The translations under genes and the position numbers were made by a program. Source: Bugula neritina (lineage: Eukaryota; Animalia; Bryozoa). From it: 64,000 nt of DNA. The stretch lies in assembly GCA_964035545.1 (NCBI GenBank), contig OZ037772.1, positions 5,646,233 to 5,710,232 of the forward strand. The letters are read 5' to 3'. The notes under the pieces were generated by a model. The model saw only the letters and a list, made by a program, of their open reading frames with translations, did not search any database and was not told the origin of the DNA. Of the stretch, positions 7,212-56,315 are shown one piece after another. How positions within the stretch are numbered: position 1 is the stretch's first letter; every line of letters starts with the position of its first letter.

Positions 7212-10200
7212 ATGGCTTCTAAACCACAACAAATGGTGAGATGTACTATTTGTTTATCTAAACTCAATATAGAGGAATGTAAGGCACTGCCTTGTACTCA
7301 CCCACACTGTGACAAGTGTTTGAATGAATTCTATGGAAGGCTGAATGCTCTTAAATGTGGAATATGTCGGTGGGTGAATAATATAATAACATAATAATAT
7401 GTTACATAATATTCTATATTTCATAATATAATGTTCATAGTAACATAAATATCGTAGGTAGGTAGGTGAATAATATAATAATATATAATATAATATGTTA
7501 CATAATATTATGTAGGTATTTTATAATAATGTAAATTATAATATAAATAACATGATGGTATTTACTATATGTGTTTATGCTATATGTAGTATACCTGTAT
7601 TGCTATATCAGGTTATATAACAGATAGTGTTACACTGTAAACTTTTATATATAATTATTATACTTTATATACTATATAGCCTATAGTCAATAATCTATCA
7701 ACAATAAATCGATCATTTATGTTACAGACAAGTGTTCAATTCAACACCTGATAAGTTGCCAACAGCAGACCAAATGAATCAGATAGACAAGTCTATACTC
7801 TGTGAAGTCTGTACAAAGTCAGGAGTGAATAACACACCTGCTCTGATGTATTGTCTAGTTTGTTCCAAACTGTACTGTGCTAAACATGTCATTGTAAGTT
7901 AACACTATTTTTTGTGTTTTCTGTGTATATATCCCTATATGTGATATTTTGAAACTGAAAGCTTGAGATTTTGGTGATACTTTGCAGAGAAATAATTTAA
8001 TGGCTTTGCAACAAAGTATTTACAATATTTGATTTGGTTCATCAATCGAAATCATTCATTTAGTTTCACTTGTTTTCACTCATTTGCTTACATGAATTGG
8101 TTTTGTGTCTTTACCTCCTAACATTTATCGATCAGCATGCTGTAGTTTATTATACATTAGATAAAAGTTATGATCAAGGAGACATAACTCTCAAGATTGA
8201 TTTCTTACATCCATGCTTTTATTGTAATAGATTGTACAATATATCTTTAAATATTTTTAAATTGTATACTATTGCATATATACTTTAGGCATTATATGAT
8301 CATGACATTAGGACCATTATAATGTATATTATATGCAATCTTAGATGTAATATCGTTAGTAAGCCACAAACTCTTTTGTATATATTTGTCTTAGGACCAT
8401 GACAATCTGGCCGAAGAACATTCTAGAATAAATATGACAGAGTATATAGCTCGCGCTGCTAAGTTAGAGAGGAGAATGTGTGAGACACATGCAGACGTAG
8501 AGTATATTTTGGGTTGTAAAGTCTGTCTCAAACTATTCTGTACTAAGTGTGTACCTACAGCTGGGGTATGTGATGATGGTAAGTGTCTATTCTTCTGTTT
8601 ACTTGCTATATATATTACATGATTCAGGTACACAACAGCTTATACATTACTTTGTATATATTACTTTAGGTACATCACAGCATATACTCTTGACGTTGAA
8701 AGATTTAACAATGCAGCTGGTGGAAGTCACAAAGTTGAAGACAAGAGAAGACAATTTATCTGGTTATTACAAACAGATAGCTGCAAACATTGATGAGTTT
8801 AGAACTGAAACCAAGAAGCTACTGGGGATGCTATGGAAACAGCGTGATGATCAGGTGATTATTACATAGTTTTTAAATTTGATAATTATAAAGATCATAT
8901 AGAAACTGTAAAAGTTTGTTTATAGCTTTTCTATAATCATCTGAGATAAGTTAATTTTTTGGTATAGATGCAAGATGGTTATACGCTCAGACACTCCTCA
9001 AACTATTCTAACTTGTCTAACATTCAATGTGACTGTATTTAGATAGCAGCTATTCAACAGAAGTATGACAAACTGGAGAAAGAACTGGTGGAGAAGAGAG
9101 AAAAGACTGAGAGTCAAGCAGTGAACTTCATGGTAGAGGAAGTGGGGGCTAGATACTGTGAGCTGTATAATCACAGAACAGGAATAGAGGCTAAGTTAGA
9201 CCAAAGTCATGAGGTTAGTTGCAGAGCATATATAGTAGATGTTTGGATCTGTAGCATTTTTATATATTTCAATGTTTTTATATAAATTCTATATTCATTG
9301 TTGCTCTATATCTGTAAATAACATCTAAAGAGTACATAAGTAGAAAATGAATCAGGTAATAACCAATAGAGGCAGTAATGGAACTGTACTATAACATATC
9401 ATGCTGTATAACACAGGACTGTCCAACATTTATGCTACCCTCAAAGGCATAAACATAAAAAATGTTGCTCGATCAGATATATAAATTAGAGTGGAAAAAA
9501 TACTTTTTAAATACATGTATCTTTGTATGCATGCTAAAACATTCAGCCTGTAGTAGTTAATGGGACTTTATTGTGTAATGATTTATAAGAATTTGGAATG
9601 AAGTAATTAATAAAATACTGACACTGTGGTCACAGCTCAAGTTAAGTTTTACAGAGTGGCCTCCAGTCACCAGAGTATTCCATTTTATTTGCTGTCGGTC
9701 TGCAAGGTACCCAGTATACTAACACTATATGACACTGTATTATAATACCGTAGGATACTGTATAATACAATAATACCATAGTACTTTTAATATCATAGCA
9801 TACTGTATAGTACTAAAGGACACTACGCAACACTATATGATACTGTATAATACTATAAAAAACTGTATAGTATTGTAGGATACTGCAGTATAGTACTATA
9901 TGATACTGTATAATACTAGAAGATGCTGTATAATGCTATATTAGGATACTGTATTTAATAGCATAGCCCACCATACATTAGCGTCAGCTTTGAAATCTGT
10001 GCTCCCTTAAGGTACAGTTTATTAGAATAAACCTTACCCATTTATAGTTGGCAGTAGTCTGTTTCCCTAATACGGCATTGCAATCTCGATCAATCAGTCT
10101 TTTGCATTTCACTGCTGTTTTTTAGATGGTTTTGTTGGTGTCAAATATAGAATTGTTGTTGATTTTATTGTTCATACTAAACACTGCCATTCTTTATAAC

Positions 10201-53600: not shown

Positions 53601-56315
53601 TTATGTTACAGGCAAGTGTTCAATACAACACCTGATAAGTTACCAACAGCAGACCAGATGAAACAGATAGATCAGTTTATACTCTGCGAAGTCTGTACAA
53701 AATCAGGAGTGAATGATTCACCGGCTCTGATGTATTGCTTAGTTTGTTCCAAACTATTTTGTGCTAAACATGTCATTGTAAGTTAACACTCTTTCATTTC
53801 TTATCTCTATGTGTATGCTTATAATAATACGACTGGGTTGGAGGAGCTACCAGTTTTGTGTCAAAACACTTTTAGGACCAAGGCATTAGAATTTGAATAC
53901 AATTTGGTGTGCTTACGATGGAAAAACACTCTGGTTTCTAGTCTTTGATTGACTGAATTGATCTTCAGTCAATCCAACACAAATATCTATTCATATTCAA
54001 TTATTTGCTCATGTGATTTGATTTTGGGCTTCTATATTCTTGCATATCCTTTATATTCTTGCATCTTTTTATATTCTTGTATTCTTGACTAGCATACACC
54101 ATAACTTAATTTACTATATGTGACACATCACCACAAAACCGGGAACTTGGCGGCATTCATGAAGTGTAGTAAATGAAGGTTAAATTTTGAAAAACCAAAA
54201 ACTGAAATTTTTTGCCAGTTTTTAAATTTTAAACTTTTCTTCTACAGAAAAACTCAAGAATTTCAAATATCATATTTTCGCAAGCATTTGCTAATTCCTT
54301 CAACCTCAAAATCAATTCTAAAGTTGGTAACTATGCATTGAATATTTCTTCAAAATGGCGAATCGTAGTCAAGTTGACTCGGAGTTATCATTAATATTAC
54401 GAAAATGAAATTAAAACATTTCATAGCGCGGAATCCTAAAAATAATTCTTTGTTTAATAAAGGTAGCTCTTGCATTCTCCTCGCATGATAGGAAGCCTAC
54501 TTCTGAAACTAAGTTTAGTATTAGCTATTTTTGGCGCTGGCTGCACAGATTAAGTTAGCTTTTAACGCAACTAATTTTACGGTACAAAATAATTATATAA
54601 TTTACTAGTAGTTATTAACTTATACTTATAGTTAAACTTATACTTCTATACTTCTAATGTTGAAAGTTATGTCTCCTTGTTTACCCTATATATTATATTG
54701 GGTAAACAAGGAGACCTAACTTTCAAGATTAGTGCATTTATGCTTCTATTGTATCATATTGTACTAAATCGCTCTATGTATACTACTATAAATGAGCATG
54801 TATGATTGTATATATTTTTTTATAAATTTAAGCATCATGATTTATGAAACTTTAATGTAATTAATGTAATATCATGTATATATGAAAGCAGTTTTATATA
54901 TTATATCATTAGTAAAATACATAATATACACTGCATATATCAAATTGTTATAGGTTCATGACGATCTATCTGAAGAACATTCTAGAATTAATATGACAGA
55001 GTATAAAGCTCGCGCTGCTAAATTTGAGAAAAGAATGTGTGAGACACATGGAGACGTAGAGTATACTTTGGGTTGTAAAGTCTGTCTCAAACTACTCTGT
55101 ACTCAGTGTGTACCTACAGCTGGTGTATGTGTCGATGGTAAGTGGCTATATTTGTTCTTTTTTACTTTAATATTGCATATTTCAGATACATCACAGCTTG
55201 TACATTACTTTGTACATACTTCAGGTACATCACAGCATACACTCTTGACATTGAAAGATTTGGCAATGCAGCTGGTAGAAGTCTCAAAGTTGAAGACAAG
55301 AGAAGACAACTTATCTGGTTACTACAAACAGATTGCTGAAAGCATTGATGGATTTAGAACTGAAACCAAGAATTTATTGGTGTTGCTAAGAAAACAGCGT
55401 GATGATCAGGTGACTTATGATTTCATTGTATTGATGATCATATTATAATGACTGTGAAATTTTGTTCAAATTTTTCATTATACTTAGATGTGAGATAAGT
55501 TACTGTTTTGGTAGATGTAAGATGCTTATACACTCAGACACTCCTCAAACTATTCTATCTTGTCTGAAATTCTGTGATATTGTAATTAGATAGCAGCTAT
55601 TCAACAGAAGTATGACGAACTGGAAAAAGAACTGGTGGAGAAAAGAGAAAAAACTGAGAGTCAAGCAGTGAACTTTATGGTAGAGAAAGTTGGAGCTAGA
55701 TACCGTGAGCTGTATGATAATAGCACAGGAATAGAGGCTAGGTTAGACCAAACACATGAGGTTGGTTGCAGAATAGGAATAATATATGTGAGGCTGTGTA
55801 TCTGTGGCTGTTTTATAGTGCTCTCTTTTTATAAGATGTTGTCAGGTGTTTGAGTGCAGGTAAAACAAAAAAACTTCTGTGTTGTTCTAGGCACCATACA
55901 TGGTGTAAAATACTGCAATATGTCAAATACTTGAAAAAGTGTTGTTTTCTCTGCTTTGCAAATGTATTTTTGTTCTTTTCAACATTCTGTAGATTATAAT
56001 AGTGGTTTTGTAGTGTTGTGATTCAACACTGAGCAATCAATCTGCCAAACACCTGTTACACAGTGTCACATTTTCTGTGTATATATATATATATATATAT
56101 ATATATATATATATATAAATATATATATATATATATATATATATATATATATATAAATATATATATATATATATATATATATATATAGATATAATACTGT
56201 TAGGTTGACATCATCAAGTCATATCATGATATGAAAAAGGAGATTGATAGACTGTTGACAGAGGAGATTCCTAATTTGTTAGAGTTTGATGTTGTGACTT
56301 CTCTCCAGCTAAAAG
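50612..56315 (+). CDS. TRIM-like copy D, partial; exons 1-6 intact (50612-50769, 53612-53777, 54954-55137, 55225-55409, 55590-55760, 56204-56315), propeller exon not in window
   Basis: Exon sizes (158/166/184/185/171/112) and phases are identical to copy A, with no stops. Confidence 0.85.
51656..52998. mobile_element. TA-flanked non-autonomous TIR element (GGGGTAACG(G)n-GCACAA ends) in intron 1 of copy D
   Basis: ta|GGGGTAACGGGG... and ...CCCCGTTACCCC|ta, with an internal direct repeat CCGGGGCACAATGGGCCAC x2. Related ends occur at ~3740-3785 and ~5440-5478. Confidence 0.8.
54656..54730. repeat. 31-bp-arm inverted repeat (hairpin) in intron 2 of copy D
   Basis: AATGTTGAAAGTTATGTCTCCTTGTTTACCC / GGGTAAACAAGGAGACCTAACTTTCAAGATT, with 2 mismatches. 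Confidence 0.85.

Follow-up and report, generated by a model that had tools for sequence, protein, structure and literature searches.

TRIM genes have been divided into a conserved group that includes the NHL class and a fast-evolving SPRY group (PMC2533329), and positive selection has been placed in the B30.2 group, with the NHL-type TRIMs among the conserved ones (PMC2533329, PMC3137616, PMC3503706). The TRIM-NHL proteins (TRIM2, TRIM3, TRIM32/Thin, TRIM71/LIN-41, Brat and Mei-P26) correspond to TRIM subfamily C of Marin 2012 (PMC3503706), and the site at which their NHL domains bind is made up of the top opening with its loops (PMC9634614). TRIM5alpha/TRIM22 and the fish finTRIMs (ftr) form tandem clusters of E3 ligases with a RING, a B-box and a coiled coil (the RBCC module) and undergo birth-and-death turnover; a conserved RING is combined with a C-terminal recognition domain that carries positively selected surface loops (PMC2533329, PMC3137616). 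Here, we analyze a tandem array of TRIM-type genes in the cheilostome bryozoan Bugula neritina, located in a 64,000-nucleotide (nt) stretch of contig OZ037772.1 (assembly GCA_964035545.1, positions 5,646,233 to 5,710,232), which we call the window and to which all positions below refer. The encoded family appears to break the division between conserved NHL and fast-evolving SPRY TRIMs, because the recognition domain that has diversified, in the course of a large lineage-specific expansion, would be an NHL-like propeller.

The bryozoan family, with its putative B-boxes and coiled coil, appears to share the features just listed for TRIM5alpha/TRIM22 and the finTRIMs. It differs from them in its recognition domain, which in the vertebrate families is a B30.2/PRY-SPRY beta-sandwich with the variable loops v1-v4 and here a beta-propeller; SPRY/PRY (B30.2) was sought with Pfam in every exon and was not found. 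The vertebrate families also have demonstrated antiviral function, whereas the bryozoan family is known here from sequence. The likeness to the TRIM-NHL proteins lies in structure, as these provide the best full-length Foldseek matches. The propeller differs from theirs in having no sequence match to the NHL repeat, the filamin domain is absent from the bryozoan family, and the canonical TRIM-NHL genes are single-copy and conserved, whereas the bryozoan family has dozens to hundreds of paralogs with selected loops. In the fungus Podospora, the nwd genes encode HET/NWD STAND proteins with a NACHT/STAND N-terminus and a hypervariable seven-bladed WD40 propeller that diversifies by shuffling of repeat units. 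There too, a propeller serves a large paralogous family as a germline recognition module, in that case for non-self recognition, and a few hypervariable, positively selected positions per blade lie on the interaction face. Seven WD40 blades behind NACHT/STAND contrast with six blades behind RBCC in the bryozoan family, and no homology is implied.

Self-BLAST of the window and exon mapping identified four collinear copies (A to D) of an eight-exon gene on the plus strand. This agrees with the first-pass annotation, which had placed a tandem TRIM array of four copies at 7212-56315; the first of these positions starts the ATG of copy A, and the second is the last base of copy D exon 6. The window has 32% GC, short exons, AG/GT introns and many transposon fragments, and AG/GT splice sites are kept at every mapped exon in all four copies. 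The encoded architecture is a RING, two probable B-boxes, a putative coiled coil and a C-terminal beta-propeller. In copy A, exon 1 (7212-7369) provides the start codon and a C3HC4 RING with the ligand spacing C-x2-C-x13-C-x-H-x2-C-x2-C-x12-C-x2-C. All eight zinc ligands and the complete spacing are present in exon 1 of all four copies, which Pfam RING models match with E-values of 7e-4 to 6e-3, under their gathering scores. Exon 2 (7728-7893) encodes a first B-box-like zinc finger (Pfam ANCHR-like_BBOX, E 1.4e-4) and exon 3 (8395-8578) a probable second B-box (Pfam zf-B_box, E 1.7e-3), both matches being below threshold. Putative coiled-coil segments follow in exon 4 (8670-8854), which is kept in all four copies and in the paralogs on contigs L001, L003, L006 and L009 (see below), and in exon 5 (9043-9213). 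Exon 6 (10274-10385) would complete the coiled coil and adds a linker with a small selected patch. Exon 7 (11221-11937) contains a further linker and the closing strand of blade 6, together with blades 1-5 up to strand C of blade 5. Exon 8 (12098-12225) contributes strand D of blade 5, a variable D-to-A loop, strands A-C of blade 6 with a variable B-to-C loop, and the stop codon.

The eight exons of copy B (22265-32192) lie at 22265-22422, 22589-22754, 23199-23382, 23488-23672, 23859-24029, 25269-25380, 31112-31825 and 32071-32192, and those of copy C (42202-47598) at 42202-42359, 42718-42883, 43559-43742, 43833-44017, 44204-44374, 45437-45548, 46610-47322 and 47483-47598. Copy D (50612-56315) has exons 1-6 only, at 50612-50769, 53612-53777, 54954-55137, 55225-55409, 55590-55760 and 56204-56315.

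A word search with the largest exon found 51 unnamed paralog exon open reading frames (ORFs), with 48-82% identity, in two JGI metagenome samples. The scaffold names carry AY690838, the accession of the Bugula neritina mitochondrial genome (PMC2678162), and the contigs are therefore taken to be bryozoan host DNA. The best metagenome paralog is at most 84% identical in amino acid sequence to copies A, B or C, and nucleotide identity to the window reaches at most about 88-93%, over short stretches. Paralog DNA was obtained from 11 contigs by exact-protein look-ups; a scan of metagenome contigs with the propeller alignment matched 289 patterns, none of which was confirmed as a related locus. A profile search of 1.84 billion representatives returned 853 cluster representatives at E<=1e-3, 118 of them at E<=1e-30. 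All named relatives among the best 150 of the 853 come from Watersipora subatra, another cheilostome bryozoan. The Watersipora proteins are 540-626 amino acids long, with the propeller starting at about residue 325-350, are spread over several chromosome-sized contigs, and bear the RefSeq names "uncharacterized", "TRIM2-like" and "TIF1-beta-like"; their B-box matches in Pfam are likewise sub-threshold. This distribution fits the earlier proposal of a lineage-specific family, and on the sequences retrieved the family is likely to be restricted to bryozoans.

Assignment of the propeller to NHL, WD40 or Kelch by sequence was rejected, as only sub-threshold generic propeller matches were obtained. 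The Pfam NHL model had no match in exon 7 of copies A or B at E<=1, and none in five full-length relatives at E<=0.01. Weak sub-threshold Pfam matches were to PQQ_2, WD40 and generic propeller models; PQQ_2 is the nearest and passes its threshold, narrowly, only in the relative P0124. A PDB profile search gave weak matches to WD40 and coatomer structures, as well as to Brat (E 0.05) and TRIM3 (E 0.25). The AlphaFold2 model of copy A exon 7 is all-beta, with a predicted local distance difference test (pLDDT) score of 80.6. For the full C-terminal domain of the Watersipora relative P0080, which is 30% identical to copy A over 227 residues, pLDDT was 91.1 and the model has 24 strands, arranged four to a blade in six blades; blade 6 is completed by the N-terminal strand. 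The best full-length Foldseek matches of this domain were the NHL domains of TRIM2, TRIM3, Brat, Mei-P26 and Thin (TM-score 0.70-0.78, root-mean-square deviation 3.0-4.6), and seven-bladed WD40 proteins scored below them. With window exon 7 alone, the Thin NHL domain came out on top, not clearly ahead of other propellers. The RBCC part of P0080 matched the B-box and coiled-coil structure of TIF1-beta/TRIM28 (E 1.3e-4). The NHL propeller of the first-pass annotation thus stands at the level of the fold, with TRIM-NHL domains ranked first by Foldseek, but not at the level of sequence. According to the models, the best description of the domain is that of a six-bladed propeller, NHL-like but divergent, set in a TRIM context; by sequence it does not count as an NHL-repeat domain.

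Short patches of difference between the propellers of copies A, B and C had been noted from the window, and every quoted patch is present in the three copies; in copy C, the strings can be read only by reading through its two 2-nt deletions (see below). An alignment of 42 paralogs revealed that the same positions are hypervariable within a strongly conserved scaffold. Across 29 further paralog proteins, up to 13 different residues occur at the patch positions, with adjacent positions invariant. The autocorrelation of the entropy profile peaks at lags of 42 and 85, which correspond to one and two blade lengths. Exon 8, already described as very divergent, is the most divergent exon, with 70% nucleotide identity between A and C as against 92% for exon 7. 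Exon 8 is made up of three strand segments that are conserved, parted by two variable loops, and its divergence is explained by these D-to-A and B-to-C loops. In two contigs from different samples (L010:2664-2789 and L011:1775-1900), the exon 7 DNA is identical and exon 8 differs at two residues, one of which falls in the variable D-to-A loop; the latter difference may be an allelic polymorphism at a selected position.

Diversifying selection had been suspected in the propeller, and an M7/M8 site test suggested. Exon 7 DNA from 14 distinct paralogs was used, comprising A, B and C (with N at the two breaks) and the 11 contigs. The one-ratio model M0 gave a nonsynonymous to synonymous rate ratio (dN/dS, omega) of 0.68. 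M2a was strongly favored over M1a (likelihood-ratio test statistic (LRT) 113.6, p 2e-25) and assigned an omega of 5.6 to 8% of sites, and M8 was favored over both M7 (LRT 132) and M8a (LRT 95). Across the site models, the selected fraction was 8-10% of propeller codons, with omega 4-6. When only the 10 intact, full-length, non-mosaic paralogs were kept (without B, C and the contig L004), the LRT was 102.5 and identical sites were returned. Posterior probabilities above 0.9 by naive empirical Bayes (NEB) were obtained for residues 40, 44, 46, 60, 83, 85, 123-126, 168, 184 and 208 of the peptide encoded by exon 7, counted from residue 1 at window position 11223. The corresponding codons of copy A start at 11340, 11352, 11358, 11400, 11469, 11475, 11589-11598, 11724, 11772 and 11844 on the plus strand. 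The dN/dS of the propeller is accordingly not uniform, and it exceeds 1 at a defined subset of codons, as the suspicion of diversifying selection implied.

Hypervariable positions were also defined independently, from 29 paralog proteins outside the DNA set, so that positions were not chosen and tested on the same data. In the DNA set, the 10 positions with an entropy of at least 2.5 bits had omega 5.2 (LRT 125 versus omega 1), and the positions below 1 bit had omega 0.32. A tree-free check gave the same picture: the proportion of nonsynonymous differences (pN) at the hypervariable codons exceeded the synonymous proportion (pS) of the whole exon in 90 of 91 pairs (median ratio 2.5). Exons 1-5, which were run through the identical code as a negative control, had an LRT of 0-1.3 for M2a versus M1a. 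Exon 6 gave an LRT of 13.4 (p 0.0012), due to three codons near its end; this patch, residues 26, 27 and 30 (copy A 10349-10354 and 10361-10363), lies outside the propeller.

In order to place the selected sites on the propeller, DSSP elements of the P0080 model were carried over to copy A via the alignment. Omega was 1.58 in the D-to-A loops (p 2e-6 versus 1) and 0.98 in the B-to-C loops, as compared with 0.24 in the A-to-B loops, 0.44 in the C-to-D loops (0.35 for these opposite-face loops together) and 0.52 in the strands. D-to-A or B-to-C loops contain 12 of the 17 hypervariable propeller positions (Fisher p 3e-5), the remaining five lie in strands, directly adjoining D-to-A loops, and none of the 17 falls among the 34 residues of the opposite-face loops. 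Since successive strands within a blade run in opposite directions, D-to-A and B-to-C loops should share one face, and it is on this face that solved TRIM-NHL domains have their binding site (PMC9634614). On the model, the variable sites are thus clustered on one face of the propeller rather than scattered over it.

The N-terminal part of the protein behaves differently. The RING exon had been reported to differ by about 0-3 residues among the copies, and our peptide counts are 0 (A-C), 3 (A-B), 3 (A-D) and 2 (B-D). Between copies A, B and D, exon 1 has 6-8 synonymous and 2-3 nonsynonymous differences (dN/dS 0.07-0.09, dS about 0.27), and the RING is under purifying selection. The RING is the most conserved exon also in the four full paralogs from metagenome contigs, in which pooled pairwise dN/dS rises from 0.18 in exon 1 through 0.28-0.35 in exons 2-5 and 0.50 in exon 6 to 0.67 in exon 7. 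Its near-invariance holds inside the window but not generally, because one paralog outside the window differs at 7 of 52 RING residues. The complete identity of the A and C RINGs is not due to constraint alone. It is explained by a gene-conversion tract common to both copies (plus strand, 7200-7727 in A and 42190-42717 in C), which spans exon 1 and intron 1 with 96-100% identity in 150-bp windows. By comparison, identity in most other introns is 73-87%, and dS for the A-C pair is 0.03 in exon 1 as against 0.14 over exons 1-6.

Of the four copies in the window, only A is intact. Its exons total 1821 nt (606 codons), and it is regarded as an intact gene because phases agree, all four split codons are sense and no in-frame stop occurs across the exons. 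Copies B and C are disabled. In copy B, exon 6 has an in-frame TAA at 25281-25283 in place of the AAG of the other copies, and the intron between exons 6 and 7 is enlarged to 5.7 kb. In copy C, exon 7 has lost its frame: compared with A, 2 nt are deleted after 46905 and another 2 nt after 47065. Copy D, with intron 1 enlarged to 2.8 kb, is truncated or interrupted; its exons 7 and 8 were looked for in the remaining 7.7 kb (56316-64000) and not found. Together with the transposon insertions described below, these states fit the birth-and-death turnover that had been postulated for the array.

We consider it fairly probable, and the best overall explanation, that this is a bryozoan TRIM-type family in which a constrained RBCC module carries a diversifying propeller face that serves as a non-self recognition repertoire. 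Copies arise through tandem duplication and are lost through nonsense mutation, frameshift or transposon insertion, and the RBCC part is under purifying selection and occasionally homogenized through gene conversion. The RING would bring in an E2 ubiquitin-conjugating enzyme, and dimerization or assembly of the protein would fall to the B-boxes and coiled coil. The hypervariable propeller face would be the ligand-binding surface, each paralog recognizing a different or fast-changing ligand, and the bound ligand, or a signaling partner, would become ubiquitinated. The most likely ligands would be non-self molecules, such as proteins or RNA of viruses or other parasites. The family may then represent a cytosolic, germline-encoded recognition repertoire, a functional analogue of TRIM5/TRIM22 and the fish finTRIMs.

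Several points weigh against this reading. Pfam thresholds for RING, B-box and NHL are not reached, and the predicted coiled coil in exons 4-6 is suggested by their charged, heptad-like sequence. The codon models were run with purpose-written GY94/F3x4 likelihood code and NEB posteriors, and the treatment of branch lengths was not uniform: they were re-optimized in the 14-sequence M1a/M2a test and fixed at M0 estimates, up to a scale factor, in the 10-paralog, M7/M8/M8a and per-exon tests. The paralog tree has a star-like shape and poor bootstrap support, and very short conversion tracts, which the pairwise homoplasy index (PHI) test would not see, could inflate the LRTs. Omega in the B-to-C loop class is not above 1, and the placement of the selected sites on one face is a modeled one, by strand topology and DSSP rather than by distances in three dimensions. 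With three of four copies defective or incomplete, this array may be largely decaying. An innate-immune (antiviral or anti-parasite) role is suggested by analogy with TRIM5 and the finTRIMs.

The most serious alternative, which we hold to be rather unlikely, accepts the same diversifying selection and replaces pathogens by other ligands, as in allorecognition between colonies, control of a vertically transmitted symbiont, or recognition of transposons or endogenous RNA. Bryozoans live in colonies, and a heritable bacterial symbiont is present in Bugula neritina, as allorecognition or symbiont control would have it. Transposons are abundant around the genes, and the variable-loop difference between L010 and L011 hints at allelic polymorphism. 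An RNA ligand would agree with the part played in RNA binding by canonical TRIM-NHL proteins, whose domains are the nearest fold (Foldseek; PMC9634614). However, the hypervariable residues are a mixture of aromatic, charged and small ones rather than uniformly basic, and allorecognition at the cell surface sits awkwardly with the cytosolic look of the protein, no signal peptide or transmembrane exon being apparent in the eight-exon model. The evolutionary data fit allorecognition, symbiont control and RNA or transposon targeting as well as they fit recognition of pathogens, these readings differing only in the ligand.

It is improbable that the positive selection is an artefact of gene conversion among paralogs, by which shuffling of loop cassettes would break the single-tree assumption of the models. 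The clear A-C tract over exon 1 and intron 1, the mosaic look of the L004 exon 7 (see below) and the star-like, weakly supported tree speak for such shuffling. However, the PHI test found no spatially structured recombination within exon 7 (p 0.71), the excess of pN over pS at hypervariable sites does not depend on a tree, and the control exons are without signal; moreover, conversion relocates existing variants and cannot create up to 13 residues per site. Still less probable is relaxed constraint with pseudogene decay in a dying array, the loops being merely tolerant, for which the nonsense codon of B, the two frameshifts of C, the missing propeller of D and a whole-exon dN/dS below 1 (0.57-0.79) could be cited, but which we reject as sole cause because relaxation cannot raise omega above 1 at defined sites (4-6, against 0.35 in the equally loop-like loops of the opposite face), the signal survives removal of B, C and the mosaic L004, and all 11 metagenome-derived exon 7 copies are open reading frames.

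If the reading as a diversified non-self recognition family is correct, bryozoans, whose immunity as a phylum has hardly been studied, provide a further independent and convergent case of a variable recognition repertoire encoded in the germline; a literature search found nothing linking bryozoans with TRIM expansions. The selected loop codons provide a short list of residues for tests of ligand specificity.

Exons of the same propeller family were also observed behind protein kinase exons in two Bugula host contigs (L004:3438-6872 and L005:4718-7351). The kinase covers positions 4-263 of Pfam Pkinase over four exons, and its closest solved kinase is MAP3K2 (E 1.6e-16). As predicted from these sequences, the propeller family is fused to a kinase as well as to the RBCC module, and the kinase-fused paralogs suggest modular receptor evolution. 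Exon 7 of L004 (5913-6611) is a mosaic, with a highly divergent first third and the rest about 85% identical in nucleotides to TRIM-type copies, which suggests exchange between kinase-type and TRIM-type genes. We tentatively raise the possibility that cheilostome bryozoans have an undescribed intracellular recognition repertoire, in which a hypervariable NHL-like propeller cassette is spliced behind either a TRIM E3 module (in the window, L001, L003, L006 and L009) or a MAP3K2-like kinase (L004 and L005), so that recognition would feed into ubiquitination or MAP-kinase signaling.

The surroundings of the copies are rich in repeats. Between copies B and C lies the body of a Ty3/Gypsy-type retroelement (34700-41200, plus strand, 55% GC), part of the turnover landscape of the array. 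It contains gag-like, protease-reverse transcriptase-RNaseH and integrase reading frames, with an in-frame stop at 37745-37747 dividing the latter two; a search for long terminal repeats around it detected none. A 79% identical copy of the element is found about 2 kb downstream of the paralogous TRIM gene in L001 (6695-9790). The segment 57641-64000, in which copy D should have had its propeller exon, is filled with inverted and direct repeats and contains minus-strand reverse-transcriptase fragments (58208-59265; RVT_1, E 4e-6).

One repeated segment occurs at the left edge of the window (362-1416) and again at 13495-14381 and 48708-49447, downstream of A and C, respectively. Given the copy at the edge, the array probably continues past the window start. 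Upstream of copy A, a tandem duplication of about 1.75 kb (2640-6419, 81-91% identity) has parts that recur upstream of the paralog in L003, and it may be shared promoter-proximal sequence. A search for tRNA genes in the window found none, and Pfam gave no match for the intergenic ORFs at 15139-15735, 19867-20163 and 40221-41042, the first of which has 198 codons and lies between copies A and B. A minisatellite-like array with a period of 28 bp and about 91% identity between its copies is located at 18131-18619, also between A and B, and another, with a period of about 22 bp, at 26988-27280 inside the expanded intron between exons 6 and 7 of copy B.

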